A stretch of 64,000 nt of DNA from Macrostomum lignano. Its lineage: Eukaryota. Made by a program: the position numbers and the translations under genes. The notes beneath the pieces were generated by a model. It had not been told where the DNA came from. It was given only the letters and a program-made list of their open reading frames with translations, and did not search any database. The stretch is taken from positions 1 to 64,000 of the forward strand of contig NIVC01002760.1 in the NCBI GenBank assembly GCA_002269645.1, in the 5' to 3' direction. How positions within the stretch are numbered: the stretch's first letter is position 1; the number at the start of each line of letters is the position of its first letter. Below, one piece after another: positions 1 to 29,865 of the stretch.

Positions 1-2074
1 TCTTGAAGAAATCTGTTATGTATTGTTGTTGGAATTCACGTTTCTCACGTTGGGCTAGAGTCCTATAGTATTCACTCTCTGTTGCGGCAGTGTAAATTTC
101 TCTAATAAGCATAAATGTTTTTTCCTCAGTTTCTAAAAATTCATAATTCTCTCAAAGAAGTGAGCAAACCAATTACATTCTGTATGAATTCATTAGTGTT
201 TTCAATTACGCTTTTCGATCGATATATTTCACCCTTTGTTTGCTTGAAAATTTCTAGTAGGTGTTTCATCTCAGCAAACTTATATTTATCTTAAACTCCT
301 CACTTTTAAATATGATCGGCTTTATAAATGTGTTCTCGCATGATCAATGATGTCGGTATCTGTTGTATATTTGCAGGTAATTAATATTTATAATTCGTCT
401 TTCTGCATCTCCAATATTTTGTCTAAAGTCAGGCTTGTTATTACATTCGACTATAGGGTTGTGTAAAACGACATTACACTGGCTTGAATATAAATTTCTA
501 GCTTGGATAACCCCACCACCAGTTAGTAATTTTATTGATGCATTGTTCAAGACACCACTTACTTCTTGACTGATAACCAACCTCTTTTTATTAATTTGTG
601 CTAGGGCTGGTTGTGGCCTGTCTATTCTTATTGGTAAATTCAAAACATCAGGACTCAGTGGTGCTGCATAATCAGATCCTAGAGTTCTAAGAAGTAGGTT
701 GTCCTCAACCCCTTGCCATTTCCACCAGCGCCATCAAACATTATAAAGTTTTCAACATTCTTACCCATTAGAGCTGTGGCTATAACGGATTCCCAACTTT
801 TTCTATTTTCTGGATCGGGATGAATTTGGTTATGCAGATTAACAATGAAGCCATAGTCGTAATCACTCACTCCAAGTACATCCGAGTAATTATATCCCAC
901 CGATTTAGTAACGTAATCGTCATATCTATACTCGCGAAACTCACCTGTAAGGAGGTCGTATACTCCATCGTTAAACCCTAGCAATTCCATTTCATGTCGA
1001 ATTCAATTTCATTGTTAGTAAACCTCTCTTTGAACAAAGTAGTTACCTGTTTGAGTTTGTTGGCTCCTTGTATTGAATTTATATTCTTTATTGTACTCTG
1101 TAGTTTCTTTTCAAGTGCTTTTAACTTCTCTTTATCATCAGCCGCCTTCTTAATTGCAATTTCGAGTCTAGTCTTTCGGTGGTTTAACTCACTGCTAACA
1201 AGTTCTGATATTTTAAGAAATATGTCATTTATACTACTTAGTTCTCTCCACTTATCATCATCAAAATAGTAAATACCATCGCTATTGTAAATTATATTAT
1301 TCTTCTTATATTCATAAACAAAGTTGGTTATGTTAACGTCAGTGAAATTATCATCAAGATACTCAATCCTACCATAGTAATCATATTTGCTTTTCCATTC
1401 CTTATATTTACAATAATTTTCTTCACTAGCCCATTTCTTCAACGTACCGATAGTAAGTCTGTCCTGTGCATCAGCAGAGCTGGTATTGGTGCTATTCCAC
1501 ACATTTTTACATGCCTCGGAATCGAACTTATCATAATTTACTTTTGACCAATCAGTGAATACTTTGTACATTTCATCACCACTGTCTATGTCGCGGAGTA
1601 TAAGTGCAACCTTGTACCAAGAATCATAGTCTTGGTTTTTGTGTTGTATTATACTTAACAACTTTGAAACTCCTTCACAACTGGGTGATGGAACGGTGCT
1701 TTTTAGTGCCTGTTTATCTTGTTCTTGGATTTCATTTTTATCCGTGGCTTTATTAATCTATTTATCTCATCAAGAATTACATCTGGCATGTCTATAAGTC
1801 CCTCGCACTTTGTACGTTTGTATTCCTTCATTTCACCATCCACATAATAGAAACCTGGTGGAGCAAATACTAAAGCTGGAATATCAAAACCCACACTTTG
1901 TTGAATCGTTACTTTCAATCCATCTACTTTGTTAAAGTAAAAGTGGTGTCCCTTGTTTGTCTGAACAACCCAATCACAATGAGTCATACACAGTTCATTC
2001 AACTCAGGGCATAGGTCAGCATTATCAATATCGATTACGGTTATATTTGAGTTTCTAGTATCTATCCAAATCAT
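1..2074 (-). CDS. PrimPol + PriCT-2 + D5/SF3 helicase multidomain replication protein, split by single-base frameshifts; the N-terminus probably extends towards ~2340
   Basis: 1703-2074: VIDID...TNKGHHFYF (AEP/PrimPol motifs). 978-1661: YDSWYKVAL...FTDWS...W (PriCT-2). 679-990: LGFNDGVYDLLTGEFR (D5_N) and Walker A GAGGNGKG. 344-643: KKRLVISQE...IKLLTGG...ARNLY...ECNNKP (SF3). One extra base in homopolymer runs at ~1740, ~990 and ~705 joins the frames. Confidence 0.9.
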
Positions 2075-2360
2075 GTTGTCTACCTCTGGTCGAAATGGTG
2101 GGAGGTTGAATTCCTATCTGCTTTGTTTGGCATTCCTGACGGTATTTTTTTCTTTGTTTTACTATTCCATGTTACACTGCAACTTCCGAATTTAAAATTA
2201 AGTTCTCATAGAGATTAATTAGTTTATCGTACGATTTTGTTTGTTTTAAATTTGTCAATCTTGGTGGTGGGCATCATGTTTTTGAAGCGGATCCTGTACG
2301 ATCACAGGAGAGAAACTTGAATCGTTTTGATTTTTTCTTTCCATTTTATTTAAAATAAAT

Positions 2361-2700
2361 TTAACAATATAATTCATCAGTTTCAATGTACTTCTCAAGG
2401 GTTATGGGGAGTTTGAAAATGTTCAACTTAAGCATGACGAAAAATTCATCATTCCTTATGTGCTGTCTTGAAATCAATGCCCATTTATCAACATGTGCAA
2501 GATATACTCTGAATGAATACAAATAAGGGGGGCATTTACAATCGTGTGTTTTAATATTTCTGCTTTATATTCATCGTAAGCTTTATCAATTTCTTCAATT
2601 AGTCGAGCCTTTCGAGTGGTGTTTTTATTTGAGAGAAATTTATAATAGAATCATAATACTTTTGTGGCAGTGCATTTCGTACATTTGGGTTAGCTTCCAT
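2361..2700 (-). CDS. Hypothetical ~113-aa viral protein with two apparent frameshifts
   Basis: AAAAATG start at 2700. The reading frame is restored by adding one base at two short runs, and it ends TAA at 2361. No recognisable domain. Confidence 0.4.
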
Positions 2701-3176
2701 TTTTCTATGAAAAATTTAACATTTTTGCTTTCTTTTGGGCAAATTTCTATAGATAATCCAACTTTAGCATTTTCTGTGTATCATTATACTTTGTCTTCTT
2801 AATTTTTCGCTACTTTTGCGCCTACTTCATTGGCAGCTTTTTTATTATTGACTGTCTTTGCGATTCCGGCTGCACCTGCCTGTCTTATGAGAGGTAGATT
2901 GTCTTTTAGTAAGTTGGAATGGTGCTTCTAGTATCAAAATACCCTCTCCATTGTACTCTAGGGCTCACCTATTGTATACTCTCTTAGCTTGCGTGGATCT
3001 GTAACGGGGCACATTTTTGTCTATTTTTAGAAACAGAAAAATAAACACAGGAACAGAAAGACTTTCAGACACCAAAGGCCAAACTCCATTGGGCTAAATG
3101 TGGCCTGCTCAAAGCGGTGATATATTTGTTTAAATTATTACCTTAATAAATGTTTGATATCAAATCATGTTGATAA

Positions 3177-3752
3177 TTATGGCGCATTAGATGGTTCTAT
3201 ATCAGCGCGGCATGTTGGGCACCTAACCATGTTGCCCTCTTGAATTCCAGTGCGATAACATATTTCACAAACTACAGCTCGACAACATGCCATGGTAACG
3301 TTTGGTGGCCGTGGTTCGTGTTGGCAGATTGGACAAAGCCCTTGATTATTCCCCGGCTGAGCTGGATGGTTCTGTACTTGAGTCGGGTTATCCTCTGGTT
3401 GAATATCAGCTAGTTGGTGCTCCATATCTTGGCGATAAGCAACCAAGCGCCTCTCTGCTTCTTGAACGCGACGTTTTTGAAGATAGTAGTTCTAGGAAAG
3501 GGTTTGGTGCGCTCGTATATGATTTTTGTAAACTAAAACCTTATAATGTAAAAACACTTTTTAACTAACCTTTAGCTGATTAAAGAAGCGCTCTTCATTA
3601 GCCAAATTTTGTGGGTTATACTCCAAAAAGATGTTGATGGCAATATCTCTAAACATTGAGTTCCTATGGTGTTGTCGCAAATTTCGCTCTCGAATTCTAA
3701 GAGTTGCTCTAGCGGCAGTAAGCCTCTCGTGCAAATTCGAGAAAGAAGGCAT
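3177..3752 (-). CDS. Coiled-coil + RING-finger protein (165 aa), two exons 3570-3752 and 3177-3491, with a 78-nt spliceosomal intron at 3492-3569
   Basis: Donor AAG|GTTAGT and acceptor CCCTTTCCTAG|AAC. The phase-0 intron contains both in-frame stops. The spliced product ends in CPIC...CC...CEIC...CPTC (RING variant). Confidence 0.8.
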
Positions 3753-3970
3753 TGTAGGAATGATAATTTGTAAGAAGGTAAAGTTAGTAGAGAAAAATTA
3801 CTAGACCTTGCCGCTCGTGGCCATTCATTTATATATTTTTATGACAAAACGTCAGACCCCGCATTCCATTCAGACCAAAACACGAGACCAATTTTTATCT
3901 TTTTATTTTTCGAAATTTTCTTCTCGCGTTTTGGTCTCGCGTTTTGGTCTGAATGGAATGCATGACTCAG

Positions 3971-4448
3971 TGTAGCAAGAGTATAAGATAAAAAATATAA
4001 AACCCCGAATTCCTGTGTTAGTCATCGAGTGAAGTTTGCCTACTTGCTTTGCTATCTTGGTCGGACAATAGCCGACCATATTGTTGCGGTGCGAGCTTGC
4101 TTCTGTGTAGCAAGAGTAGATGAAAAATATAAAACCCCGAATTCCTGTGTTAGTCATCGAGTGAAGTTTGCCTACTTGCTTTGCTATCTTGGTCGGACAA
4201 TAGCCGACCATATTGTTGCGGTGCGAGCTTGCTTCTGTGTAGCAAGAGTATAAGATAAAAAATATACAACCCCGAATTCCTGCGTTACTCATTGAGTAAA
4301 GTTTGCCTACTTGCTTTGCTACGGTGGTTGGACAATAGCCGACCATATTATTGCTCTGCGAGATTGCTTCTGTGTGTAGCAAAAGTAGATGAAAAATATA
4401 CAACCCCGAATTCCTGCGTTAGTCACTGAGTGAAGTTTGCCTACTTGC
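3971..4448. repeat. ~135-bp tandem repeat (about 3.6 copies) in the viral intergenic region
   Basis: Unit starts TGTAGCAA at 3971, 4106, 4238 and 4375. Units contain GAATTC and the hairpin GGTCGG-acaatag-CCGACC. Confidence 0.9.
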
Positions 4449-4544
4449 CAGCTTCCTAAGATAGTAATTTTTGTTTATTGACCCCGTTGGGAGTTTTTGT
4501 GCTTATGTTGTGTGTTTTAATGGTGACTATGGTGTTATGTCTAA

Positions 4545-5890
4545 TTATGTGACAATTATGTCTAAAATCGGATAAAGTTGAAAGCCTGAAACAATAAGAA
4601 CAGTTGATCCTTCAGTGGCTGAATTAATATGCACTCTATAAACAGAGAATTTTTCGATGGAAGCTACTTCGAAATACTTCATCACTCCAGGAACTAAACC
4701 AGCGTTTTCGGTAGAAAAAATATTCTTAAAGTCTCTCTTGTTATTGCTTCCTTTCAGAATAAAACTTTTTGGTTGATTTTTTATAATTTCACTACCTACT
4801 GCTTTGGTTCCTTTCAATCCGAATTTCCAAATTTGAATAGATCGGAAGTTGTACTTCAATGTAAGAATTGGGTTCATTCCTCGATGCCCATTCTGAATTA
4901 GATACTATATAACCCCAATTATCTGACGTTTCAAATGCTCCTGATGACGCTACATTGAAACCCCTTTCTCTATAGTTTTGACGTGTTGCTAGTGGGGAAT
5001 ATATCCTGTATAAGATTTGAAACCTAGTCCCCGCCTTAGTCGCAGCTCCACTGATTCAAGTGCATTGTCTACGTATAGCTTTGGTACAGCTTGAAGTCTA
5101 TCTATAGGCCACACTAAATCATTAACCACTGTTTGTCTCTCAAGTAATTCAACTTTTGTAAGCTTTACGGAACCAGAAAAATTAAGAGAATAATGGAAAT
5201 AATATGAGGGATTGGGTATTTTTTTCCTAAGATGTGCATTGCCCCTTCGTAGTTCAATGGGTGCACTTTGTTCAACAGGTGTCCAGTTTGTTCCATTTAG
5301 GCTCACACTAACAGACCAACCAGGCCACACCTCTCCTTCCAACTTTATCTCTACAACTTTCCTAGCTCTTTTCAGAAATTGAACTCGTATCCACTTGTCT
5401 GAGTCATCTACACTGCTCCATTCTGAAGCTGGGTTTGAATCTGCAACATGATATGCTGCTGAAGAGTTATGAGAAGCGGTCACTTTCATGTCAGGATCGG
5501 AAGCGTTTGAAGTCAGTAATGAAAGAATATTGACTAATTTCGAACTCTCTGTACCCCCACAGTACCTTGCCTTTCTGCTAACAAAGTGTCAATTTCGGTT
5601 TTAGAATACATCTTAGTGTCAATTTCGGTTTTTGTGTAGACATTGTTTACGCGCCCATGAGCATCGTCAATTAATTGTAGCATGGTGATATTCATTGCGT
5701 CACTATCTTCCTTTGAATAAGAGTCTGAAACATTTCTCTTTGCTAACAATAAATTATCTATTTCCTCTCTCTTATATCCTTCATTTTCATTGATGTATCG
5801 ATCATCAGCTAACGCTATTGTTATTCCAGGCGCTATATCATTTGAATTTGACGAGTAACCAAATTGATTGGCAGTATTCTTGTAACTCAT
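4545..5890 (-). CDS. Fibre/spike-like virion protein: YTKxEID repeats plus two discoidin/F5-8C-like domains (frameshifted)
   Basis: 5534-5890 has YSKEDSD/YTKTEIDTK/YSKTEIDTL repeats. One added G in GTGGGGGTAC joins it to 4989-5489 (EWSS...WIRVQF...SLNGTNWT). The later frames give GYIP(P)L...EWASRNEPNSYIEVQLP...IQIWKFGLKG, a second jelly-roll-like module. Confidence 0.6.
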
Positions 5891-6318
5891 TTTAATTGCT
5901 GCAAAATTTCATTATAGCTATCTCCTTTATCGATTCGGTGTAAAAAGTACAGCGACATTTGACCACAATATTTCTTATCAAAAGTTTGAATTTGTTCTTC
6001 CATGTCTCCACATATTCTATTCTTTGTGTGATTAAACTTTTCCATAATTTCCAGTGTGGGTGGTAGTGCATAGGAATCAAAAAAATAAACCTTATCAGGA
6101 GCTGAAAATATAGCTGAATGATGTATACCCCGTTCTTTCGAAGTGTGAATATTTGTCATAAAGTAACCATACTGTGGTAAATCAACAATTTCATCTCTCA
6201 TGGCATAGCGAAATGGTTTTAACTTGAGATATTTTGCCCAATTTATCAGATCAATATTAGTCGTAGTGTCAGTCCCAAACTTTTGTTTAAATGCATTCCA
6301 TGTCTCAGCTTCGCTCAT
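5887..6318 (-). CDS. Adenain-like cysteine (maturation) protease
   Basis: Catalytic motifs in order: GIHH (His), FFDSY (Asp), QIQ (oxyanion Gln), YCGQ (Cys). The likely start is AAAAATG at 6318. Confidence 0.92.
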   Translation of the reverse strand: MSEAETWNAFKQKFGTDTTTNIDLINWAKYLKLKPFRYAMRDEIVDLPQYGYFMTNIHTSKERGIHHSAIFSAPDKVYFFDSYALPPTLEIMEKFNHTKNRICGDMEEQIQTFDKKYCGQMSLYFLHRIDKGDSYNEILQQLK

Positions 6319-6327
6319 TTTTAACAC

Positions 6328-7117
6328 TCATATTTGTCGTACGTGTAGATTTATAAATATTTCCTCGCCATCAAAGTCGTATAGAACACCAGACTCATCT
6401 TCGATGACAAAGTCGAATGTGCTCAACATGTTTGTAGTTAGTGGTAGGTACACAGGATTTGCAGGTCTTGAATAATTTTACTTCCCATTGGGACAGAGAA
6501 CGATGGAATTGAAAGAAGTATTTGCTTATCAATTAAATGATCTCCATTGGCTGGATCAGTGATAAAACCCCCTTTGATATTGAGACAACGAACCATGATC
6601 GCACTTCTAGCTCCGTCTATCCGAGCTGGATTTGGAGCTCTCTCAAATGGTTTCAAATACACTTCCGAATTGAATCCCAACAGTCTTCTAAAGTTATTGG
6701 AATGTGCATCCCTGAAATCAACTTGATAATCTGTGGCTAACCGTAACTCAACTCTACGCGTGTCTAGGCTTGCACTGAAAACAATAGCCCCCTCTTTCCA
6801 ATCATTTGCAGCTGTTAGCAATCTTAGAATCTCGCTTGACAGACTTTTAACTTCCCAAGATCCCGCTTGAATCTTTATTTTTTCCATGTTCTACCACTAT
6901 CCCTCGAGTATCGCAACTCATTATTGCCTCCTTCAATATTGTTAATAGCATCAAAGACTGCAAACTTTTTTATACCAGCTTCGTATTCTCGATCTTCATA
7001 CAAATTTATAGGAGTGCCTAGAGTTTGTCGAAATGGGTTTTTAATTGAAAAGAAGTCAAATGTGCGTTGAAACTTTTTACTCAAGAGGATGTTGACTTTT
7101 TCTATTTCTTTTTCCAT
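6328..7117 (-). CDS. Minor capsid protein (penton), two single-base frameshifts
   Basis: Three frames (6875-7117, 6438-6887, ~6328-6465) join into a Polinton penton-like protein: NNELRYS...IQAGSWEV...LLGF...PANPVYLPL...FVIEDESGVLYDFDGEEIFINLHVRQI*. Confidence 0.85.
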
Positions 7118-7119
7118 TT

Positions 7120-7850
7120 TTAAGCAAGTAATTCTACTAGCTCTTTATCAACATTGTTATGTCCCTCTGCTTTTGCGGCTAGTAATGTCAACACTCTTTC
7201 ACTGAGTCCAGATCCCGGTTTTACTCGATATCCTGGTGGATTATCTTTCAATATCCTTACTGCTTGCTTATAATTCCCACTTGATTTGGCCGCTGGATTT
7301 TTACAATGTTCAATGAGGTTAACATAATCCTGCAATGTTTGCATCTTGAATTGCTTCAGCTCTTCACCATTTTCAGTTACTTTAGGCATTTTGAACAACT
7401 CTTCAAGATCTTCAGAAAATGGCATTCGAACTTCATTGACAATGATGTCTCGACCTTGTTCATGGAATTCAACATCTATTACAGATGATCCAAATATATA
7501 TCCAGCATCAGTTTTTTGAATCCGTATACTAGGCGCTGGTCTTTGAGTTATTGGAATCTTTCCAATTTCTTCAATTATTTTGTCAAATACTTCTAGGGTT
7601 CAAATCGGCCTTTTGGTGTACTTGATTGCGGAACTGGAACTTTTTGATTCTGAAGTTTATCAACAAGGTTGGCATTGACATCAATAAATTCATCGAGCTT
7701 TTCTGTGACAGGTTTTTGAGCTAATGGAGCCACTCTTGCATATAAACTCTCTTCTCCAATTTTCAAATAGCGTTGAGCATCATTTCTGGATTTGTACATT
7801 TCTCGCTGCTTTGCTAAATTAATGAGTTCTCTTATATATTCATTAGTCAT
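7120..7850 (-). CDS. Conserved Maverick-type virion protein (~243 aa) with one frameshift at 7595
   Basis: ORF 7593-7850 joins 7120-7425 through an open frame if GAACCCTAG is read as GAACCCCTAG. The C-terminal GSGL...LTLLAAKAEGHNN resembles the conserved Maverick LLxAxxxAGN motif. Confidence 0.6.
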
Positions 7851-7852
7851 TT

Positions 7853-8622
7853 TTACAATGGGATTTTAGTTAGAACATCCTTATACAAATCTTGCTCATC
7901 CTCATCAGCTCTTGTATTTATATAGATATAGCCATACTTCTTTTTCCAAGCCTCTCTACATTTAGCCTTGAATATAGCGGGTTCATAATTCGTTTCTATA
8001 TTTCTAGCAATGTGATTTAAGTTTGTATCTTTTTGTTTAAAGATTATGTAACATGTCGTATTCTCCCTGACAGTATTGCGATCTAGTTTGGTAAAATTTT
8101 GAGCTAGATAAAAACCACAACAGTTTCCATGCCTGCCTCTCTGAAACAGACTTTCCTGAAATGTTTGATTAGCCTCTCCCAAAACATCGTCCAATATCAC
8201 ACATGTCTTTAGTCCATTATGAAAAATTTCTTCATTTGGAGTATGGGAAAGAGTGACAGAATTTTCTCTATTACTTCTGAATTTTCTGATGTGCTTTGCA
8301 CTCGACCAGGTCGGCTGCCTCGACAAATATGCTTAATATCTTCAGGAGATGCATCCTCACTCACCTGGTAGACATGATAGAGTGAGTTGATAAGAGAAGG
8401 TGGGAGACCATTTTCAAAGCCATGCTTTAGAAACTGATACTCTGGATCCATTTGAGATGCTCTGGGAACATATAAAACTAACTCATTAAAGTCAACTAGT
8501 TTTTCAGGACTTGTAAGAATATGGAATAGTAAATATGTTTTACCCGTATTTGTAGCGCCGATAATACAACATAAAAGAGGATTAGGGAAAATAGGATCAT
8601 GCTGAAATTTTACTTTGGGCAT
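7853..8622 (-). CDS. A32/FtsK-like DNA-packaging ATPase, one frameshift at ~8260-8330
   Basis: Walker A IIGATNTGKT, Walker B VILDD, FQRGRHGN...YLAQNF and A32-type C-terminal WKKKYGYIYIN. Confidence 0.93.
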
Positions 8623-8643
8623 TTAAAAAAAGAAAAAATGACC

Positions 8644-10008
8644 TTATTCGACGCGGGTCATTTGATATTCACTGGTAACTTTTATTACATTCTTTGTTTG
8701 TTCAAGAATTAGTGCAAAAGCAGTCAGCTCAACATTTGTTGACTTCTTGATAAATAATTGAATATTCACTCCACTCTTGACCAGAAACTCATCTTGAGCT
8801 GTTAGATCAAAGCAAAAGATTGGATAGATGGTTAGAAAGTCTTGTTTATTGAATGGAGGAGTTACACCGAAACGGCTGCAGATGTCTTCGTACATTTCAT
8901 ACGCTCTGTGAATGTCTTGAGCTACTGGATCAATTTCAACATAATCATTCGGATACATCACCTGATTTAATCTGACTTGAAGCTGGGTTATTTTCACTGA
9001 ATTTGCTCCAGTTTTGTAAGACACATACTTGTGATCATTAACTATATATGATGGGTTGTTTACGTCATATTTGAAAGCTACAAAGATTGCAAGTGGCATA
9101 TTGGAGATGTTGGCTATGTTCCATGTATATGGACTTCCTTGAATGAGTTGTGGTGGAACCGTTACCCTCTCTGGAAATGATACTGTAATGTCCTTGTTGA
9201 GTGATTTTAGAAAAGCTGCTTCAGCACTGGGTGACAAAGTAATAGCAGGGATCCAAATCTCAAAGCTATTAATAGTTAACTTAGCTTCCGTCCCGGCAGC
9301 TCCAAAGAAAATTTCAGCATCGTTAGTCTTTCTTGTCCATGTGAATTTATATTTAATTCCTTTGCTAATCTTCTGCCAATCAAGGAACCCAATGAGAGGT
9401 GTTAATGATAGTTTGATTGTTCCACCTCTGTTTGGAGCATTAGTGACATTGTTATAATTTTCAAGCCTCCTAATGTATCCAGTATTCGAATCCTTCTTAT
9501 TGAGTCTATTTTTCATAGCGATTGCTGCAGTTCTCACAGCTTCAGCATCTGCGTTGTTTGCTAGAGGTATATCAGAAACAGTCCCAGCATCTCCAGTGTC
9601 TGGAATCCATCCGTATGCTTCTCCAACTTCATTCATTAATTTTGAGTACATTACGGACTTTAAGATTGTGTCATACTCTCCAGGATCATTATAGACTTTC
9701 TTTGTTCCTCCAATGTCAACTATGAGTTGAGAGAAAAGTCTCATAGGCCAATTATGTTCTAGAGTAATGTTCGTATTCAAGTCGGTGTTATCTCGTTGTG
9801 TTATTGAGTATTTTATACAACCGAATGCCTCTGACATGAGAATGTATGACTCTGTTGAATTGACTTCATGAACTATTTGACCTCCTGCAACATTGAGATT
9901 ATTAGTGCTACCTGGAGTTGGAGAAATCTTAATATAGTCTTCTTTCTTTTTGAAAAAGCTAAAAGTTTTGTCCTCATATATGCTCAGTATATCCTTTTTG
10001 TTCTCCAT
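8644..10008 (-). CDS. Double-jelly-roll major capsid protein (454 aa, intact)
   Basis: Intact ORF next to the ATPase and penton. Motifs LFSQLIVDIGG, LTINSFEIWIP, QVRLNQVMYP, YPIFCFDLTAQDE resemble Polinton MCPs. Confidence 0.88.
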   Translation of the reverse strand: MENKKDILSIYEDKTFSFFKKKEDYIKISPTPGSTNNLNVAGGQIVHEVNSTESYILMSEAFGCIKYSITQRDNTDLNTNITLEHNWPMRLFSQLIVDIGGTKKVYNDPGEYDTILKSVMYSKLMNEVGEAYGWIPDTGDAGTVSDIPLANNADAEAVRTAAIAMKNRLNKKDSNTGYIRRLENYNNVTNAPNRGGTIKLSLTPLIGFLDWQKISKGIKYKFTWTRKTNDAEIFFGAAGTEAKLTINSFEIWIPAITLSPSAEAAFLKSLNKDITVSFPERVTVPPQLIQGSPYTWNIANISNMPLAIFVAFKYDVNNPSYIVNDHKYVSYKTGANSVKITQLQVRLNQVMYPNDYVEIDPVAQDIHRAYEMYEDICSRFGVTPPFNKQDFLTIYPIFCFDLTAQDEFLVKSGVNIQLFIKKSTNVELTAFALILEQTKNVIKVTSEYQMTRVE

Positions 10009-10028
10009 TTTTATAAGAGAAATTTCAA

Positions 10029-10481
10029 CTAAGCTTCATGAGGTCTAAGAATTATCCCATTACCCTGTTTCTCCTTTTCAACTTTAAAAGTCTTTAGCAG
10101 CCACTTGACTGCTTCGCTGGGTACTTGTTCGACTCTTTTAGCCGCATCAACTAATACTCCACTCCCTTGAGCCTTTTTCAACTCTTCTAGTTTTTGCCGT
10201 TCAATGCTTTCTATTGTCTTATTATGTTTAGCATTGTTGGCTGTATTAACACTTTTTGCAATCATTGTACCAACTCCTGAGGCTGCTCCGATACCACCCA
10301 AAATTGCTGGTAGTAAGCCTAATAGAGGAATTATTCCACCTTCATGTTCTTTCTGTTTCTCTTGCAATTCTCGAATCTTCTCTTTAGAAAGATATTGCTT
10401 TTGCTTATTTACAGTAACATATCTTGGTTTTCCCTCTCGAACATATCGATTGAGTCTTGCTTCAGTGTTTTTCTCGCTCAT
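10029..10481 (-). CDS. Adenovirus pX-like core protein
   Basis: HEGG-IIPLLGLLPAILGGIGAASG resembles the adenovirus pX C-terminus (MRGG-ILPLLIPLIAAAIGA), following an adenain-type GG site. Confidence 0.7.
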   Translation of the reverse strand: MSEKNTEARLNRYVREGKPRYVTVNKQKQYLSKEKIRELQEKQKEHEGGIIPLLGLLPAILGGIGAASGVGTMIAKSVNTANNAKHNKTIESIERQKLEELKKAQGSGVLVDAAKRVEQVPSEAVKWLLKTFKVEKEKQGNGIILRPHEA

Positions 10482-10489
10482 TTTTAAGG

Positions 10490-10912
10490 TCAGAATTTCT
10501 TCAAACCATTGCCTTGTCTCAAAGACACTTGAGACTGTTCTGCTGTTCCTAGAGCCTTTTTAACAATATCTTGAATAGCCTTATTTGATTGAGAAGCTAT
10601 CTGTTGCTCTTCTTCCATTCTTTTCTTTGCTTCTTTATCTCTACGTTTCTTTTTAATATATTCCAGTTCCTCACCTGCTTTAGACATGTCACTGTATGAT
10701 TTCTTCGCATCGAATATGTTCTTCGCTGTGGTAGCTGTTTTACCTATTGCATCAGCTCCACTCACAATTTTACTTCCATGATTTGATAAAAAGTTTGTGA
10801 CACCACTGATCATATCACCAATTCCTTCACCCTCTTTATCAGCTAGTAGTTGTGAATCAGACGTTTCAATCTGACCTTTCGCCCGTTTGCAGTTTGTTCG
10901 ATAGGCGCTCAT
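10490..10912 (-). CDS. Small virion protein with a GEG-preceded amphipathic helix (pVI/cupiennin-like, putative)
   Basis: AAAAATG at 10912 gives 140 aa. KEGEG-IGDMISGVTNFLSNHGSKIV is amphipathic after a GxG site. The C-terminus is QGNGLKKF. Confidence 0.5.
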   Translation of the reverse strand: MSAYRTNCKRAKGQIETSDSQLLADKEGEGIGDMISGVTNFLSNHGSKIVSGADAIGKTATTAKNIFDAKKSYSDMSKAGEELEYIKKKRRDKEAKKRMEEEQQIASQSNKAIQDIVKKALGTAEQSQVSLRQGNGLKKF

Positions 10913-13104
10913 TTTTAGTTGAAAAATTTGCTGGTAGAAGCTGGGATTTGTAAAATGATCCAATAATTTCTTCTCCATTCTCATCCTCAATAATGTAGGT
11001 TATGGGATTGGAGTAAACTATTTTCTTTATCCTAAACACTTCTGAAATTTTCCAATATCCTCTTCGACCCTTTTCAAAGTGCTCCTTATATCTATAGATA
11101 TGAACTTTGTCACCTACTTTGAAGTTTGGTTTCCCATTTGAATACTCGAAAGTTGGCTTTGGTACTCGCTCAGGATGTTTAGATGCTTCTGAAGGAGTTA
11201 TCAGAATCTCAGAATGGATTGTGTTGTTGTATTTTTCAACAATAGCTGGCAATGTGTGGAGCCACTTCTGATTACCCTGTAGATCAAATTCAAACCAGAG
11301 TTTATTTGTGAGAGTACGATTGAACCTCTCAATCATTGCATTCTTGGACTCGCCATAAATTGAAAACATCTTGTTTATATATTCACCCTTTTCATCCTTC
11401 TTTCTAATGTTGTCTTTTGAAAACGAATATAGCTTGTACATATGCTGATTATAAAACTCCTTGCCTTCATCTACACAAAGTCTCTCTGATCGTCTTCCTG
11501 ATTCCTTAAATACTTTTTGGAAAGCTTCTGCAACTTCCGCTCCCGTCTTTGTTTTCAAAGGAACTGCCCAGGCGTAACGTGTAAAACCATCTATGATAGT
11601 GAGAGCATATTTGTAACCTCTTTCAGGAGGAAGGATAATAATATCTGCATGCCAAATTGTGTCTTTTGCATAGTGAATCATTTTTCTAAATACTCTTGGC
11701 TTTCGATATTCTTTATGCAATTTTACTGCATCTTCATAGCTAAGACCCTTACCATAAATTGTTAGACAGTCTATACAATTGTTGGGGTTGTGAGTATGAA
11801 TGCCTAATCCAAACCGAACTTTAGCCTTGATAATACGCTTTACTAGATTTCGAATGAGTCTCTCTTTCACAGACAAGTCACTGGTTGGAATAGCATCTAA
11901 ATCAGCTATCATTTTTTCATCAGCTATATGCTTCTTTGCTAGAGCTTCCTCTGGATTTGAAGAAGTGTTTTCAGCATCTCTATAGTTTTTGTCATGATAG
12001 TAAGCAGTCCAATCGATTGGGTTAATTGGTAGACTGTCATACCGAGGCCGGTCTGTAATTGGATTGAGTCTCTTGTCTAAATTTGTACCCGGCAGTTGTT
12101 CCTCAATCTTTCGAAAGAGGCTGGACTTTATCTTAAGGCTTCATCAGGATTGACCAGATCCTTCAGCCCCACCCCCATTAAGTCTCTGAACCTTCTCCAT
12201 ATCCTTGTCAACTTCGTTCGGACTTAGGAGCTTGGCTGCGGATTTCCACCATGTCCTCAAGCTTGTTACCATCGAACCATAGGTTCGCGGACGAAGTCCG
12301 ATTGGGAACAGGAATTACCTGTGTTCCTTCAGAAGATTTCTCAACTGAAGTGGTACTTGAGGCTGTTATTGACGTACTAGAATCGGACGGAGTTCCCGCA
12401 ATTTGAAGGTGTCGCCAATCACTAAGCACTTGTTTAATGTTGGTTATAATGTTTTTGTATTGATCACCATAAAGAAATTTCAATGCAAATTCTCCTGTTA
12501 TAAGGGTGATTCCATTGTCTAGTAAAATATTCTTAGGTTCCTTTGTAGTTCTATTGATGCATACATAATACAACTGATAGGTGGGATAAGAATTTTTATA
12601 GTCTAATAGTTTCTGATAATTCCTTTCACGACTTGATGAATTGTCCGTGTTATCAGAAGATTTAAGCTCTAATGCAATCTTTCGCTCAACGTGAACCAGG
12701 TCTATCTTTTTTACCTTCTCGAATCCAAAATAATTTTCTGCTAATATTTCATATAGTCTGCCTAGTCTCATTTGAATAACTTTAATCTTGTGTGAAATTA
12801 TTAACTCTTCTTGGAAAAGATCATGAAGAATTTGATCATGCCCAACCTTATCATCAATTGGTTTCAGAAGAATTTCTCGAATTGTTTGCTCCATTTTTAC
12901 TATAGAAACTTTAACAAGTGCTTATTTGATGACTAGCAAGGACATTGACTTCCTCACTCAGGCCACTACGTAACCTGCAAAAGAATACCCTGGAATATGA
13001 AGTTCTCCTGGGTATTTTCCAGTGGCGAAGATGGGTGGTAGTTTTGTTATAGCTGACTGAATATCTAAAGCATTTCCTAGAAATAATGGTTTACTGAAGG
13101 CCAT
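10866..13104 (-). CDS. Parvovirus-type PLA2 + DDE (rve) integrase fusion, 452 aa after splicing; exons 12973-13104 and 10866-12092
   Basis: Exon 1 is MAFSKPLF...GELHIPGYSFAG (44 codons). Exon 2 is PGTNLDKRLNP...IDWTAYYHDKNY...KHIADEKM...KAKVRFGLG, then IWHADIIIL, IIDGFTRYAWAVPLKTK, LCVDEGKEF, MIERFNRTL. Exon 2 is in frame and stop-free. Confidence 0.92.
12093..12972 (-). ncRNA. Group I self-splicing intron, subgroup IC1 (880 nt)
   Basis: The 5' exon ends in U and pairs CAGGU/GCCUG (P1 U.G), and the intron ends in omega-G. P AAUUGCGGG (12395-12403), Q AAUCCGCAGC (12235-12244), R GUUCAGAGACUU (12180-12191), S AAGAUAAAGUCC (12123-12134). P3 CACCUUC/GGGGGUG, P4 UGCGGG/UCCGCA, P5abc with GAAA L5b, P6a/b, P8, P9.0 AG/CU and P9 with a GAAA loop all form. 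Confidence 0.96.
12208..12894 (-). CDS. Intron-encoded PD-(D/E)xK endonuclease, Eco47II-family restriction-enzyme-like (putative homing endonuclease)
   Basis: It has its own AAAAATG and the motif IDLV...ALELKSSDNTDNSSS. The domain lies in the loop of P2.1 (12-bp stem 12913-12924 / 12423-12434). The C-terminal ~70 codons read through the ribozyme core. Confidence 0.8.
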   Translation of the reverse strand: MEQTIREILLKPIDDKVGHDQILHDLFQEELIISHKIKVIQMRLGRLYEILAENYFGFEKVKKIDLVHVERKIALELKSSDNTDNSSSRERNYQKLLDYKNSYPTYQLYYVCINRTTKEPKNILLDNGITLITGEFALKFLYGDQYKNIITNIKQVLSDWRHLQIAGTPSDSSTSITASSTTSVEKSSEGTQVIPVPNRTSSANLWFDGNKLEDMVEIRSQAPKSERS

Positions 13105-13529
13105 TTTATATATATAAAATTTACTATCGTTGAATTGGATGACACTTTCATATTGTATATACCTGAAATTGCATTAAATTGACCCGAGGATCCAACCTTT
13201 CTCATGGTTTTAGAGCTGGAATCGTGAAAATTGCACTTTTTAAAAAAAATAGAAAATCACAAAAAATCGCTGTTTTCAGACCATTTTCACCTGTTTTTAG
13301 TCATTTTTCAGTTATTTTTAGTGATTTTCAAAATGAGTGAGGGCATGAGGGCGAGGGCACCCCCCCTTTTTAAAAGTATAAAAAATCCGGAAATTCTGTC
13401 TTCTGAGAAATATACCACAGGCCAATGCCCCCCACATGCCCTCACCCTCAACACCCTCAGTCACAGATATATGTATATTTATATATTTTTATATTTATCA
13501 CACCCCACTTGAACCCATGACCTCCTGGT

Positions 13530-13628
13530 AGTAGTAGTATGTTATAAGGGGTTGAGTCATCCAGCGAGCTGGCGCGCAATGCGCCCGAGCAATAAGTGTG
13601 GCGCAACCCCTTATAACATACTACTACT
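13530..13628. repeat. Terminal fold-back: perfect 25-bp inverted repeat around a 49-nt GC-rich spacer
   Basis: AGTAGTAGTATGTTATAAGGGGTTG (13530-13554) is the exact reverse complement of 13604-13628. Confidence 0.95.
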
Positions 13629-14025
13629 CAGCTCAGCGCCGACTGCCGCGTCAGCTGGGTGAGTCCTGACTGAGAACTGCTGCCTGACACTGAAAATACT
13701 GAAAATATTGTTTGGCGAAATTTCATTGCGCTTTGATGATCGGCGCCCTGAAGTTCTCAGCAGCGCCGCTGTCAAGCGAGGGCGTCATGAATCTGTCAGT
13801 GCAGCTCCTCATGGCGACTCCAACCGCCCCATGGCGCCCCCAACCTCCCCATGGCGCCCCAAACTTTTCCGTGGCGCCTCCAAACTCCCCATGGCGCCTC
13901 CAATCTCCTTATGTTCCCCCAAGGCTCACCCACAGATCAATCTGCAAGGGCTTCTAATTTACCAGAGGGCACGCACAAAATTGACTCCGACAAGGCTCTG
14001 GCAATGGCCTGAGTTCATTCAGCCC

Positions 14026-14609
14026 ACACAGCTACAGCACACAGCTACAGCACACACAGCAACAGCACACGGCTACAGTACACTTAGCTACAGAACACAC
14101 CGCTACAGCACACAGCTTCAGCGCACACAGCTACAGCACACAGCTACAGCACACAGCTATACAGCACACACAGCTACAGCACACAGCTACAGCACACACA
14201 GCTACAGCACACAGCTACAGCACACAGCTACAGCTCACAGCTACAGCACACACAGCTACAGCACACAGCTACAGCACACACAGATACAGCACACAGCTAC
14301 AGCACACAGCTACAGCACACAGCTACAGCACACACAGCTACAGCACACACAGCTACAGCACACAGCTACAGCACACAGCTACAGCACACAGCTACAGCAC
14401 ACAGCTACAGCACACAGCTACAGCACACACAGCTACAGCACACAGCTACAGCACACACAGCTACAGCACACAGCTACAGCACACAGCTACAGCACACAGC
14501 TACAGCACACACAGCTACAGCACACAGCTACAGCACACACAGCTACAGCACACACAGCTACAGCACACACAGCTACAGCATACACAGCTACAGCACACAC
14601 AGCTACAGC
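14026..14609. repeat. CACAGCTACAG(CA)-type 11/13-bp minisatellite
   Basis: Direct tandem repeats; they account for the spurious long ORF 13708-14811. Confidence 0.95.
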
Positions 14610-15586
14610 ATGCAAATTATCCCTCATTGCCTCAATTCGCATCGCCTCAGACCCGAAGGCCCCCCGTTCCTGGAGCGCTGGGACGTCGTTCGTCTTATCG
14701 GCCGCGGAGGCTTCGGAGAAGTCCACGAAGTTCGAACTGACACGGGCGTCACGTGCGCTGCCAAGACTCTCAGAATGCCTGTACAGCTCGGTGATGAGCT
14801 GCCCTCTGTGAGTTCAGAAATCCACAGAGCTGTGGAGAGCGAGAGAAACCTGTGCCGACTGCGGCATCCCAACATCGTCAGGTTCTTGCACATGGCTCAG
14901 CCGGAGCCCGCCACAGTCGTTGTGTTCATGGAGCTGCTGGACGGCCGGAGCTTGGAGAGGTTTATCGACAGCAAGCCGCTGGACGAGCCAAAGATTCGAG
15001 ACTTCAGCGAGCAGGTGAGCATTGTGCATCCTTGATGCTCCTGTTCCATGTTCCCATGAATGATGACTGCTCACTGACCAACCGCTCGCAGATCTGCCGC
15101 GCGCTGCTCTACCTGCACAGCCGGCAGCCTCCCGTGATCCACAGAGACATCAACTGCTCGAACATAATTGTTCATGCTGACAATACGCGAATCAAGCTGA
15201 TCGACTTCGGCCTGTCAATCAAGCTGGAGCAGTCAGTCAGCCACATGTCAGCCTCCACTCAGTCACCCAAAGGCACTCTGAACTTCATGGCGCCAGAGCT
15301 GCTCGGAGCGGGAGAGTCGGACAGCGTGCAGTACAGCAGAGAGTCGGACATCTGGGCGTTCGGCTGCTCGGTGTTTCAGATGGCCTCCGGCGCGAGGCCC
15401 TTCAGAGGCAACCAAAGCGTCTATCAGGTCGCCTTGAAAATTGCAAACAGTGGCGCCCCCGCCCTGCCGGACGGCCGGTCCGCAGAGCTGAGGGATTTCT
15501 ACAGCCGCTGCACCGCCATGGATCGCAGGCAGAGAAAAGACGCACAGGAGTTGCTTGAGCACGAGTTCCTGAGGAAAAACCTCTGA
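14610..15586 (+). CDS. STE/MAP3K-like Ser/Thr protein kinase, paralog 1 (intron 15015-15091; upstream exons not resolved)
   Basis: [17 protein letters not shown], intron CAG|GTGAGC...CGCAG|ATC, HRDINCSN, DFG, GTLNFMAPE, DIWAFG. Confidence 0.88.
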
Positions 15587-16084
15587 CTCTCAGTGCTAAC
15601 TTGAGTTGATTCTAACACTGTCGGGAGATTTTGGAGCTTTATGTTAGGCGTAAATCGAACGCGAACAAAATTTCTTTTTCTAAAATTAGCCTACACTTCT
15701 ATCCTTTTAAACTCTTCCTTATTTCATCGCCATGGCGCTTTAATTGCTATGAAAGCAGGTTCCATTTTTAGAGCGGTAGCTGGCCATTCGAAAAGCTGAG
15801 AAACAGAAAATTTCTTGAGTAGACAGCGAGAGGACAAAAAAGGAGGGCACCATCCAGCATCCAGCACCCACACAGCACCAACGCAACCGAAATCATTTCC
15901 ATTCTACATCACAGCTTATGATCTCCATTCTCCATCAGATGTATCCAATTTGTCATATCGTTTATTACTTGAACTGCATGGATTTTAAGCCACATGGGCA
16001 TTACTTGTGCTCAATCCGATTTGCTAGCATGGGCACATGCAGGGCTTCTGATGGAGCTCTATTTTTTCTCAATTGGAATTGATG

Positions 16085-16880
16085 GAGAATGGAGAAGCTG
16101 AGCTGAGACCTGATGATGAATAGAGAAGCTGAGCTGGGATCTGATGGAGAATGGAGAAGCTGAGCTGGGATCTGATGGAGAATAGAGAAGATGAGCTGGG
16201 ATCTGATGGAGATTAGAGAAGCTGAGCTGGGATCTGATGGAGATTAGAGAAGCTGAGCTGGGATCTGATGGAGATTAGAGAAGCTGAGCTGGGATCTGAT
16301 GGAGATTAGAGAAGCTGAGCTGGGATCTGATGGAGAATGGAGAAGCTGAGCTGGGATCTGATGGAGATTAGAGAAGCTGAGCTGGGATCTGATGGAGAAT
16401 GGAGAAGCTGAGCTGGGATCTGATGGAGAATAGAGAAGATGAGCTGGGATCTGATGGAGATTAGAGAAGCTGAGCTGGGATCTGATGGAGATTAGAGAAG
16501 CTGAGCTGGGATCTGATGGAGAATGGAGAAGCTGAGCTGGGATCTGATGGAGAATGATGAAGCTGAGCTGGGATCTGATGGAGAATAGAGAAGCTGAGCT
16601 GGGATCTGATGGAGAATAGAGAAGATGAGCTGGGATCTGATGGAGAATAGAGAAGCTGAGCTGGGATCTGATGGAGATTAGAGAAGCTGAGCTGGGATCT
16701 GATGGAGAATGGAGAAGCTGAGCTGGGATCTGATGAAGAATGATGAAGCTGAGCTGGGATCTGATGGAGAATGATGAAGCTGAGCTGGGATCTGATGGAG
16801 AATAGAGAAGCTGAGCTGGGATCTGATGGAGAATAGAGAAGATGAGCTGGGATCTGATGGAGAATAGAGAAGCTGAGCTG
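16085..16880. repeat. 31-bp minisatellite
   Basis: GAGAAGCTGAGCTGGGATCTGATGGAGA(A/T)T(A/G) tandem array. Confidence 0.95.
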
Positions 16881-27230: not shown

Positions 27231-29817
27231 TTCACGAGAAACGTTTCTAAGGTCTGAGCCATTGATTTTTTGCTTATTCTGTTAGGATAGTTACTTTTAT
27301 AATTAATAATATGTATATTCAAAATAACCACAGCATTAATATAATTTAGAATTGCAAATTTAACTTGAATCTTTTTATTCTGATCAATAATGATCACTGC
27401 AATCAGTTCAGCATAAAGTTCATTATCGCACTCTTCTTAAAATAAAAGTCCAGGACTTTGTTAAAGCTCGTCTCGAGCTGTCTGGCAGGCACTGGCTATT
27501 TCCTCAGTTCGAATTCTTCCAATAGGTACATTTTTTCTTTCGATTCAAAGTACTCGGTTCACTGCAGCCGAATGTTCTGGCGAACACCTTGTTGTTGGAC
27601 ATAGCGCTGTCAAACTTGACTTGGAAGGCGTTGTGCGGCTTGAAGGGCTGGCTAATCTGGTTTGTGATCATGGTACTGTAAAAGAGTTGAGCAATCAGTG
27701 TAAAAAAACACCTGATTGAGTTGATTTTGGTCGGCAGATTCAGCTGTACAAAGTTCATCTGCAGCTTGGCGGGAGTTGCTCAGCTCAATAAATGCTTTGG
27801 TAGCCAGCTCGACGATTTGCAGATCCATAGTGGCGTGCTCAGATGATGGCAGCGCTGACTCAGTACGCTCGTATCTGCAAGCTGCTGATCCGTTGCGTTG
27901 TCACCTACCGAACGGTTGGTTCGAATATTCGCTACATTATTCCTAGCTTTACTGTCCATGCCTACATTGCTATGAGTAGTGGTATTTGAAAAATTGGAAT
28001 CCAGCCTGCTGATGAACCGAAGCCAAACATTATCATTTCTCCTAGCAAGAGCATCAGCAGCAGAAAAAAGGTCTGAGCTGTTCAGCACACATTTGACAAT
28101 TTGTTTCTGCTGCTCTGCAATAGATGATCTGTTTTCACTTATTTGGGTGATTTCTTCCACGACTTGCCAGATCGGTATGCTGAATGCGGTATCCAGACGG
28201 GCAGAGTTAATGAGCCGTAGACTTGCGCTGTTAAATATTGGTGGCGTGCGCAGACCTAGAGGGGTGGAGACAATTTTAGACGAGTAATGAGTGTTTGAAT
28301 ATTGTTGATAAACACTTAAAGGATTCTGCATAAAAAATGAGCAGTACTGTTGAAATTTCTGGCCGTAAAGTATCGGATTCTCAGCTGGGAAGCAAGGCTC
28401 ATCAGATACAGAGCGCCAAAGTTGTTTTCCTCGTCAGCTTCAACTCTTTCGGCGTAGGTTTGAACAAGAGGTGCGTAGATATTCTTTAAAGCTGGAAGAA
28501 ATTCAGCCGAGCTTCTTTGATCCGTAAGTTCGAAAAATTCGCTAGTGTACCTCAGCTGTCTAAGTTGATCAATATCGCTATCAGCCCACCAATTCTGAGA
28601 CTCAAAACTCTGGATAGCAATTTTTTTGACACGTTCAAACACAGTCTCTGCATTGGCTGCATCAGTTGAGTTATAGCATGCCGCATTGTACATGGTGGAT
28701 ACCACTGGTTGGAGCAGTGATTTTGTAGTGTCAAGACAAGACAAGATTATTAGTCTCCCTTAACAAGCTCGGAATCATTTTTGAGAGTTCGAAAAGCCAG
28801 TCAAACAAAATTATCTGAGTGCTTGCTTTATCCAGTATTGAATTAAAGTTCCCATCAAGTGGCATACTATCGGATGTTAAATTAATGAATGCACCTAAAT
28901 AGGCAAACTGATCAGGGTACGCAAGTAACAAACGGCTGCCGTCGAAATTCGATTCCACTTCTTCAAGAAATTTAGTCCATGAAAATGAAACTTGAGTACC
29001 AGCTGAAACACAATAAGTAAAGTTTTCAAGCTGCTTTAGATCCAGGGCCTTGAAGCCTCGTGTAGCTCTCTGCAAGCAAAGCTGCAAGGAATCCAACTTT
29101 GATAGCTCATCCAGAGAGGCCAGCTTTTGCACAATATTCGTCTCCTTCATCTCAATAGAATTCGTTACGTTCCATTTCCTTAGGAATTTCAGAAATTTAT
29201 TTATCTCCAACGACTTGTTGACTTGGCTGCGAAATGAAGCATTTGGCGTGATTGAACCTTTGGGTCTCGGATCGGGATCCGCTGTCTCGTACAGGTGCGT
29301 GCGTGACGCCATTAATAAAAGGAAATATTGGCGAACTGGCGTAAAAATACTCTAAACCTGGCTTCAAACAGATGGAAGCAGGCTCCATAAAATAGGACGT
29401 TGGCACACCGGTCATGGCAAGACTCGCTAGCAGAGACTCGAGCTTAAGAACTCCGCCTCGAAGCCTGAACTCGGTCTCCAGATTGTTGAGCAGCTGGCTG
29501 AAAAGGCGGATCTGAGAAACGCGCCGAGCCTCGTCTCTGCGTCAGAGCCGTTCTGCCAACTAAGGCAGTCGCCGTACAGTCTACTAGCGATTCTGGTCAG
29601 ATTAGAGACCATATCGTCCTGCTGCTGTGCAAGAACAGGTCTTTGTGGGGCAGATTTCCGGCGGCGAATTGGTACATGGACTCGCACGGATTGGCTGACT
29701 GATTCATCCAGCTCGTAGTTGCCGGTTCGTATTGTTCCATATTGCAGACCGTTTTAGTAGCTGCACTTTGCTGTTCCTCCGAGGCTAGAGGAACGGAGTT
29801 TACCGGTTGAGTCGACT

Positions 29818-29864
<47 letters not shown>

Positions 29865-29865
<1 letters not shown>

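Follow-up and report, generated by a model that had tools for sequence, protein, structure and literature searches.

A putative homing endonuclease of the Eco47II restriction family in a group I intron of an endogenous polinton-like virus

Homing endonucleases are commonly characterized by recognition sites that are long and rare, and restriction enzymes by short sites combined with a protecting methylase. The present work concerns an open reading frame (ORF) located inside a group I intron that splits an integrase gene belonging to an endogenous polinton-like virus (PLV) of Macrostomum lignano. The stretch analyzed, referred to below as the window, comprises 64,000 nucleotides of contig NIVC01002760.1 (assembly GCA_002269645.1, positions 1 to 64,000 of the forward strand), and the ORF occupies positions 12208..12894 on the minus strand. 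Its product is read here as an Eco47II-family PD-(D/E)xK nuclease of about 166 amino acids (aa) and as the putative homing endonuclease of the intron, with a probability of roughly 0.7. The original prediction, which envisaged a recruited Eco47II-type restriction enzyme as the homing endonuclease, is supported as to its candidate by family and fold, by the loss of sites throughout the lineage, by a pair of loci with and without the intron and by putative escape alleles. The intron and its structure, family membership, fold, site loss, intron presence or absence, clustered changes and escape alleles were computed in this work, and we infer GGNCC cleavage by the window protein, the position of the cut, the ensuing homing and the timing of expression.

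The group I intron of a cyanobacterial tRNA-fMet gene is known to encode a PD-(D/E)xK nuclease that is used for homing (I-Ssp6803I; PMC3384342). I-Ssp6803I represents the only characterized lineage of PD-(D/E)xK homing endonucleases and is a tetramer with a 23-bp pseudo-palindromic target (PMC3384342). The window protein has no detectable sequence similarity to I-Ssp6803I, and the latter is absent from the top 50 Foldseek matches of the window protein. In contrast to I-Ssp6803I, the window protein falls into a bona fide type II restriction family, apparently has a 5-base site and resides in a eukaryotic virus-like host rather than in a bacterium.

Eco47II was placed in the PD-(D/E)xK superfamily in 2012 (PMC3424549). 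Restriction-modification (R-M) systems of the Eco47II family (Pfam PF09553), such as the dcm pair on a Lactobacillus iners plasmid, share with the window nuclease the family itself, the D...ExK site, the NT.NSSS motif and the inferred GGNCC target. Unlike these systems, the window nuclease has no companion C5 methyltransferase, is considerably smaller (about 166 aa versus 280 aa) and is encoded by an intron.

Matches to the group I intron model RF00028 have been reported in the PLVs of Paulinella micropora, Desmodesmus and Rhodomonas lacustris (PMC12220804, Microbiome 2025), and the protein of the gene containing the Rhodomonas introns “remains unannotated” (PMC12220804). These introns are probably of the same class as the window intron; their insertion site, nuclease family and any site avoidance are not described in that paper, and its supplementary files have no searchable entries for the intron matches. 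The disappearance of GGNCC also has a precedent, as the Rosenblumvirus phages are devoid of all Sau96I GGNCC sites (PMC6346686). There, the same 5-base site has been lost from a small viral genome, and the enzyme belongs to the bacterial host, whereas the PLVs themselves carry a member of the enzyme family, in an intron at the one remaining site. Free-standing homing endonucleases that act together with ORF-less introns are known from collaborative homing and from the pathway to mobile introns of Bonocora and Shub (both cited in PMC11296320), and the three stages predicted are all represented in the PLV family. The known enzymes of this kind are phage nucleases of the HNH, GIY-YIG or Endo VII type with long sites, in contrast to the restriction-family enzyme of the eukaryotic PLVs. 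In full-text literature searches, no paper was found in which Eco47II or PF09553 is connected with homing, or in which PLVs are described as avoiding GGNCC.

The group I intron and its nuclease

The integrase gene of the window PLV is split into two exons on the minus strand, which also carries the intron with all the elements listed below. According to the ORF list and its translation, exon 1 (12973..13104) consists of 44 codons (MAFSK...YSFAG), the last of which is the glycine codon GGT. Exon 2 (10866..12092) starts with the codons CCG GGT ACA (PGT, continuing as PGTNLDKRL...) and carries the remaining PLA2-like motif (HDxxY) and the rve core. Pfam detects the rve domain in exon 2 with an E-value of 5.8e-10, and the match to Phospholip_A2_4 is weak. 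Joined together, the two exons read as a PLA2-like plus rve integrase of the PLV.

The intron itself (12093..12972) is 880 nucleotides long; it begins directly behind the U of GGU, and its last nucleotide is the omega-G at position 12093. These boundaries were set by comparing the locus with alleles that lack the intron and with six further introns. The Rfam model RF00028 matches positions 12485..12102 with 88.9 bits (gathering score 50), on the same strand as the ORF. The Rfam alignment places the ribozyme core P3–P9, featuring a large P5 extension, at 12102..12485. P1 is made up of the internal guide sequence GCCUG (12959..12963), read from the sequence, and exon CAGGU, the splice site being marked by a U.G pair, and the guide covaries with the exon between loci (GCCUG/CAGGU and GCCUAA/UUAGGU). 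A P2 hairpin (12934..12956) was found with the alignment and RNAalifold and shows compensatory changes between clades.

The ORF-containing loop is closed by a 12-bp helix whose 5′ strand (12913..12924) is a perfect complement of the 3′ strand (12423..12434), the latter lying within codons ~154–157 of the ORF. Equivalent helices of 12–16 bp bracket the ORF in metagenomic loci L002–L005 and in locus L019, making six ORF-bearing introns including that of the window, and their sequences differ between clades. The helix enclosing the ORF follows P1 and P2 and precedes P3, and is therefore P2.1 by position; the original placement of the ORF in the P2.1 loop is borne out by this covarying helix. RNAalifold applied to the ORF-deleted introns returned 87 pairs, 42 of them with compensatory changes, spanning P2, P2.1, P4, the extended P5, P6, P7 and P8. 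The helix in the P2.1 position and the large P5 extension are compatible with subgroup IC1. Framing the intron as one of the nuclear rDNA type was rejected, as the host gene is a PLV integrase, and the comparison with nuclear introns and their His-Cys box endonucleases that had accompanied the prediction is inapplicable for the same reason.

The same organization was observed outside the window. A tblastn alignment of the integrase to L001–L005, metagenomic loci with homologues of the ORF, breaks exactly between residues 44 and 45, with the ORF in between, and L019 has the same arrangement of split integrase and intron. In all seven complete introns (window, L002–L005, L019 and L040, belonging to three PLV clades), exon 1 ends with ...GGT, exon 2 starts with CCN and the last intron nucleotide is G. 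The L005 intron is recognized by RF00028 with 65.3 bits. The introns of L002–L004 were missed by Rfam even at an E-value of 0.1 and were recovered via the split integrase alignment, the conserved core sequence and covariation. Judging by these comparisons, the intron can be regarded as a bona fide, conserved group I intron. Translation of the ORF as a fusion with exon 1 was considered and rejected: the two are in frame, and a TGA codon lies five codons into the intron.

The ORF starts with ATG, encodes 228 aa and terminates with TGA. Its catalytic segment (12661..12702) includes D65 (12700–12702), E76 (12667–12669) and K78 (12661–12663), and the family hallmark N82-T-D-N-S-S-S88 is encoded at 12631..12651. 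Thus the PD-(D/E)xK signature IDL...ELK followed by SDNTDNSSS, named in the original prediction, is present in full, as I64-D65-L66, E76-L77-K78 and S80-D-N-T-D-N-S-S-S88. The protein matches PF09553 (RE_Eco47II) over aa 24–157 with an E-value of 7e-7 and 29.5 bits, above the curated cut-off of 25.9 bits, and the score rises to 30.7 bits when aa 1–165 are taken alone. Fifteen close homologues, all of them metagenomic, show 44–63% identity in the alignment. In the resulting alignment of 16 sequences, E76 and K78 are invariant, D65 is nearly invariant and the stretch T83–S88 is invariant. An exhaustive profile search extended the family to 317 representatives; 51 of the 56 sampled match PF09553. 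In the alignment of these 56 representatives, all three catalytic residues are nearly invariant, and the family consensus is ELKNRxNTDNSSSR.

Other searches were less productive. A profile search of the Protein Data Bank (PDB) sequences gave only chance matches (E above 0.2), none of which was significant, and a Foldseek search of the BFVD viral structure library gave no informative match. NCBIfam had no match for the window nuclease or for three PLV paralogues. No match was obtained by tblastn with the window protein against plasmids or with a giant-virus homologue against phages.

AlphaFold2 modeling and Foldseek delimit a folded nuclease domain of aa 1–166 (12397..12894), with a pLDDT above 90 over most of its length. 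The best PDB match of the predicted core is restriction enzyme EcoO109I (1wtd/1wte; E 8e-5, probability 1.0, 13% identity). EcoO109I recognizes RG^GNCCY. Its likeness to the window protein consists of the fold and of the GGNCC core of its site; it differs in having a rearranged active site, EPD-XXK (PMC3424549), and in needing the outer R and Y bases, whereas the homing sites T-GGGCC-A and A-GGTCC-G do not fit RGGNCCY. Both the Pfam family and the predicted fold, whose best match is an enzyme with a GGNCC core, agree with the Eco47II-family assignment made originally. On the strength of motifs, profile and model, the window protein is a distant, miniaturized member of the Eco47II family.

The C-terminal tail, aa 167–228 (12211..12396), is translated from the P3–P6 part of the ribozyme core. 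The tail has a pLDDT below 50, is predicted to be disordered and coincides with part of the core as aligned by Rfam. Where it seems conserved, the conservation is that of the ribozyme RNA; for example, AAAUUGCGGGAA is read in different frames between loci. The tail is probably outside the functional enzyme.

Two genes of the window PLV, the packaging ATPase (7853–8622) and a second conserved gene (6591–7084), each align to their counterparts in locus L016 in two reading frames. The window copy of the PLV therefore probably carries frameshifts, resulting from decay or from assembly error, while the ORF of the intron is intact. The intron ORF of L002 (7421–8000) is itself frameshifted, being represented by two tblastn segments in different frames, and the called protein is truncated to 146 aa, which is consistent with the decay that homing endonuclease genes usually undergo. 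Such frameshifts, together with the 62-aa tail that is merely translated ribozyme, are what one would see if the ORF were a passenger that is in decay or lacks nuclease activity, such as a relic or a splicing helper, of an intron that is now inherited only vertically. Against this, the window ORF retains all catalytic and hallmark residues, and their retention in homologues of 44–63% identity implies purifying selection. The polymorphism of intron presence and the clustering of changes at the site, described below, argue for recent mobility as well. We regard a passenger ORF as very improbable.

The insertion site and the loss of GGNCC

In the integrase gene, the intron separates the Gly codon from the Pro codon of the conserved motif Y-x-G-P-G (GCA GGT | CCG GGT). 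With the end of exon 1 (GGT, at 12973) and the start of exon 2 (CCG, at 12092) ligated, GGTCC is formed; the exon ends thus confirm that the junction GCA GGT|CCG holds a GGTCC which the insertion destroys, as had been predicted. Neighboring Gly and Pro codons always spell GGN-CCN, and therefore the junction GGNCC alone is uninformative. By the same token, every intron-less Gly-Pro allele must carry GGNCC, and the insertion breaks it as GGU|CC. No GGNCC was found within the intron or at either of its boundaries.

The window PLV (counted over 1..13200) contains no GGNCC at all, against 14.8 ± 3.8 expected (range 14.4–14.8). Positions 1..14657 are free of the site, the first GGNCC of the window being located at 14658. 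Zero was reached in none of 2000 dinucleotide-preserving shuffles of the PLV, the lowest count being three. The control sequence CCNGG occurs 17 times (14.9 expected), and every other XXNYY palindrome reaches at least about half of its expectation. The 12 related PLV segments, 117.7 kb in total, contain 4 GGNCC versus 61.8 ± 7.5 expected. Pooled over these segments, GGWCC occurs once (42.3 expected), GGSCC three times (19.5 expected) and CCNGG 97 times (63.3 expected). An effect of composition was rejected as the cause of the GGNCC absence, CCNGG having the same base make-up and occurring at or above expectation. Specificity of the EcoO109I type, RGGNCCY, was rejected as well, both for the misfit of the homing sites and for the avoidance of GGNCC regardless of its flanks. 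More distant PLVs are not depleted: seven PLV or viral contigs of this kind contain 82 GGNCC versus ~102 expected. In the same pooled segments, GCNGC is 2.6-fold over-represented (163 versus 61.8) and GGNNCC occurs at about half of its expectation (29 versus 62.2).

Three of the four surviving GGNCC in the related PLVs are the Gly-Pro of GPG in the integrases of intron-less loci L016, L017 and L048, where each is the sole GGNCC in 11–15 kb. For a genome of 11 kb with one GGNCC, the chance that an intron lands within this site would be about 4 in 11,000. Integrase identity among these PLVs has fallen to ~45%, and therefore shared ancestry alone is insufficient to account for the absence of the site, which requires continuing selection. 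That a 5-base sequence has been purged completely speaks for a short recognition site, which would be atypical of homing endonucleases.

The intron ORF may instead be supposed to encode a homing endonuclease with a long, degenerate target, similar to I-Ssp6803I, in which case the GGNCC of the junction would be a by-product of the Gly-Pro codons and the loss of sites would have another cause. The characterized homing endonucleases do have long sites, that of I-Ssp6803I being 23 bp (PMC3384342), the window protein resembles bacterial enzymes of the Eco47II family only weakly in sequence, and Gly-Pro always gives GGNCC, whatever the enzyme. A long target, however, provides no cause for purging a 5-base site from 118 kb (4 versus 61.8), and the PLVs encode no other source of such selection. 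Also, the flanks of the insertion site differ between clades (TTGGG|CCAGG in L016 and L017; GCAGGT|CCGGGT in the ligated window exons). A long-site enzyme is accordingly considered quite improbable, a little less so than a passenger ORF, and a short-site nuclease is preferred.

Intron mobility, methylases and the proposed mechanism

Loci L016, without the intron, and L019, with it, were obtained from one sample and share 98.4% identity over a length of 9.6 kb. Just upstream of the insertion site, 11 of 30 nucleotides differ, almost all of the changes being synonymous. Downstream, five differences fall within the first 120 nucleotides and none within the next 480. The divergent flank beside the intron of L019 is the one found in other intron-plus loci. 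This clustering of changes resembles the pattern of a co-conversion tract expected from homing.

The integrase motif could be read in 64 homologues. Of these, 58 retain Gly-Pro, and the exceptions are GAQ (three times), GLD, GTG and GAN. All six integrases without Gly-Pro lie among the 35 closest relatives, as expected for resistance (escape) alleles. A scan of IMG/VR with a single integrase protein gave no match, and the alignment-based integrase scans of this database returned mostly short contigs.

Several PLVs contain the nuclease or the intron separately. Locus L040 has a 302-nucleotide group I intron without an ORF (3280–3581), which likewise separates Gly from Pro in its integrase, a distant relative of the GPF type with 33% identity. 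Its 10.7-kb contig contains no GGNCC versus 6.2 expected, and no Eco47II-like gene was detected on it. In L049, a free-standing Eco47II-like gene (1856–2392) is located directly upstream of an unsplit GTG integrase (2385–3578), and a second, weaker paralogue is found at 4148–4654. Similarly, a free-standing Eco47II-like gene of L018 (9441–9974) is directly upstream of an unsplit GAQ integrase (10001–11356). The PLVs of L049 and L018 have zero GGNCC each. Three stages appear to be represented in these sequences, namely a free-standing nuclease (L049, L018), an ORF-less intron (L040) and an intron-borne nuclease (window, L002–L005, L019). As to their order, we infer that a free-standing nuclease and an intron gave rise to a mobile intron.

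The absence of a methyltransferase near the ORF, claimed in the original prediction, holds for the window PLV according to Pfam analysis of its ten largest ORFs, a six-frame motif scan and tblastn with the giant-virus C5 methylase. The latter search found no C5 methylase in the PLV loci either. The situation is different in ten giant-virus contigs (L006–L015 from IMG/VR, most of them named as giant-virus metagenome-assembled genomes), which encode homologues 29–36% identical to the window ORF. In all ten, a C5 cytosine methylase adjoins the nuclease according to tblastn, e.g., at 4146–4658 and 4674–5639 in L007, and database protein P0151 is a fusion of methylase and nuclease. One of these contigs, L015, with a GC-content of 61%, contains 36 GGNCC versus ~131 expected.

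Giant viruses offer a further explanation, according to which the PLVs depend on them or compete with them and the Eco47II-like R-M systems of these viruses drive the loss of GGNCC from outside. The intron would then persist mainly for disrupting the only GGNCC that recoding could not remove, as it encodes the Gly-Pro of an essential motif, and the ORF would be a nuclease captured from a giant virus and not the main driver of intron spread. The R-M pair exists in that environment, as all ten contigs with the homologue demonstrate, and alleles of the GAQ and GTG types would be selected in the same way. PLVs in whose examined segments no nuclease gene was found (L016, L048 and L040) are as depleted as the nuclease-bearing ones, and the depletion is therefore a property of the lineage, for which giant viruses could be responsible through restriction systems of this family. 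This explanation nevertheless needs a coincidence, in that a nuclease of a family associated with GGNCC is present in the very intron that splits the sole GGNCC. In addition, intron-less alleles with an exposed GGNCC persist (L016, L017 and L048), and the clustered changes between L016 and L019 indicate repair-mediated transfer. External restriction may also have pre-depleted the genomes, which is compatible with homing. As a full account of the locus, external imposition seems unlikely, though less so than either a long-site enzyme or a passenger ORF.

Homing by the intron nuclease, the reading preferred here, would proceed as follows. The intron would splice itself out, with P1 formed by exon AGGU and guide GCCU, the U.G pair at the splice site and the terminal G, and the integrase frame would be restored. 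The ORF in the P2.1 loop would yield a dimeric, type-IIP-like nuclease recognizing GGNCC, which would cut intron-less copies of related PLVs at or beside the Gly|Pro junction. Repair from an intron-plus copy would then transfer the intron and a few tens of bases of the flanking exon. The specificity would be supplied by the target genomes: with the other GGNCC purged in the PLV lineage, the enzyme would effectively be a single-site cutter on PLV DNA. Self-protection would consist of site avoidance and the disruption of the site by the intron, and no methyltransferase would be needed.

A number of observations weigh against this mechanism. The Pfam score of the window protein is modest, and its clade-mates fall below the cut-off (20.0 bits for the L019 nuclease and 18.7 bits for that of L018). 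The alignment to a bacterial Eco47II-family enzyme is limited to ~25 residues (ELK..NT.NSSS), the comparator being the protein annotated by NCBI as “Eco47II family restriction endonuclease” and encoded beside dcm on the Lactobacillus iners plasmid. Specificity often differs among distant homologues of restriction enzymes. The lack of GGNCC is equal in L016, L048 and L040 (the Gly-Pro sites of the first two apart), where the nuclease gene was not found, and the fourth surviving GGNCC, L003:5457, is a stray site. Intron-less L017 keeps GGGCC at its Gly-Pro site (position 3511) despite encoding a divergent Eco47II-like paralogue elsewhere (8135–8722, minus strand, Pfam 37.7 bits), next to the ATPase gene. 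This paralogue cannot be cutting GGNCC freely and must be unlike the intron enzyme in either specificity or regulation. Host DNA would be struck as well by an enzyme with a 5-base site, since the host flank in the window contains 110 GGNCC in 50 kb; expression must therefore be restricted, or it would be harmful to the host. Finally, the PLV that houses the window nuclease has at least two genes split across frames, and this copy of the nuclease may have become inactive.

In a wider form, the proposal is that a short-site type II restriction enzyme serves as a homing endonuclease in a PLV lineage that has purged GGNCC, possibly at first under the pressure of giant-virus R-M systems, so that only the GGNCC imposed by an essential Gly-Pro dipeptide is left, and that the nuclease, initially free-standing next to the integrase gene and then intron-borne at that site, converts or kills relatives exposing the site. 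We give this wider form even odds. It suggests a third arrangement besides the classical homing and R-M systems, in which a methylase-free, short-site enzyme of a restriction family is site-specific since the genomes it encounters have lost the other copies of its site. It would also provide a concrete route for the interconversion of restriction enzymes and homing endonucleases, the stages of which are visible in related elements, and would enlarge the set of homing nucleases by a further family. Group I introns of PLVs, unannotated until now, would acquire a function, and conflict of a restriction type between PLVs, giant viruses and their protist hosts is indicated. One dipeptide, Gly-Pro encoded as GGNCC, can couple protein conservation to nuclease targeting. 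If the proposal is true, a methylase-free restriction system, a selfish intron and an inter-virus weapon are combined in one element of eukaryotic viruses.

The endogenous polinton-like virus and its flank

The PLV occupies positions 1..13104 of the window (~13.1 kb) and continues beyond the left window edge. According to the composition analysis, the GC-content of this block is 36.8%, compared to ~49% in the remaining part of the window. The low-GC block is identified as a PLV because the capsid, A32-like ATPase and primase domains are encoded there. Pfam analysis of the PLV ORFs assigned the double-jelly-roll capsid gene (8644–10008), the A32-like packaging ATPase (7853–8622) and the Prim-Pol and PriCT_2 primase pieces (978–2074), all on the minus strand. 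An ORF with an F5/8 type C (discoidin) domain (4989–5489) is oriented in the same direction. A 132-bp tandem repeat (3970–4448; 3.6 copies, 91% matches) is located inside the PLV and overlaps an ORF with a HIRAN-like match.

The high-GC flank is considered to be eukaryotic nuclear DNA because it contains a LINE-type retrotransposon ORF (29807–34468), encoding endonuclease, reverse transcriptase and RNase H, and an ankyrin-repeat/ion-transport ORF of 1688 uninterrupted codons (38327–43393). Retrotransposons also accompany two of the metagenomic PLVs. In L003, an LTR-type element with protease, reverse transcriptase, RNase H and integrase (6343–9975) directly follows the PLV genes, and in L016, a LINE-type element with endonuclease and reverse transcriptase (3036–5738) lies in the flank upstream of the PLV. 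These contigs can therefore be taken as integrated copies in a eukaryotic genome, too.

A 49-nucleotide imperfect palindrome (13530–13628), with arms 78% complementary and 1 nucleotide apart, is located ~400 nucleotides outside the integrase start, near the boundary between PLV and host. The host flank is dense in minisatellites (14025–14610, 16080–16880, 35319–37048, 45052–48617 and others), which include a 3.5-kb array of a 22-bp unit with a strong GC skew. A long “ORF” at 13708–14811 is merely a translated 13-bp repeat.

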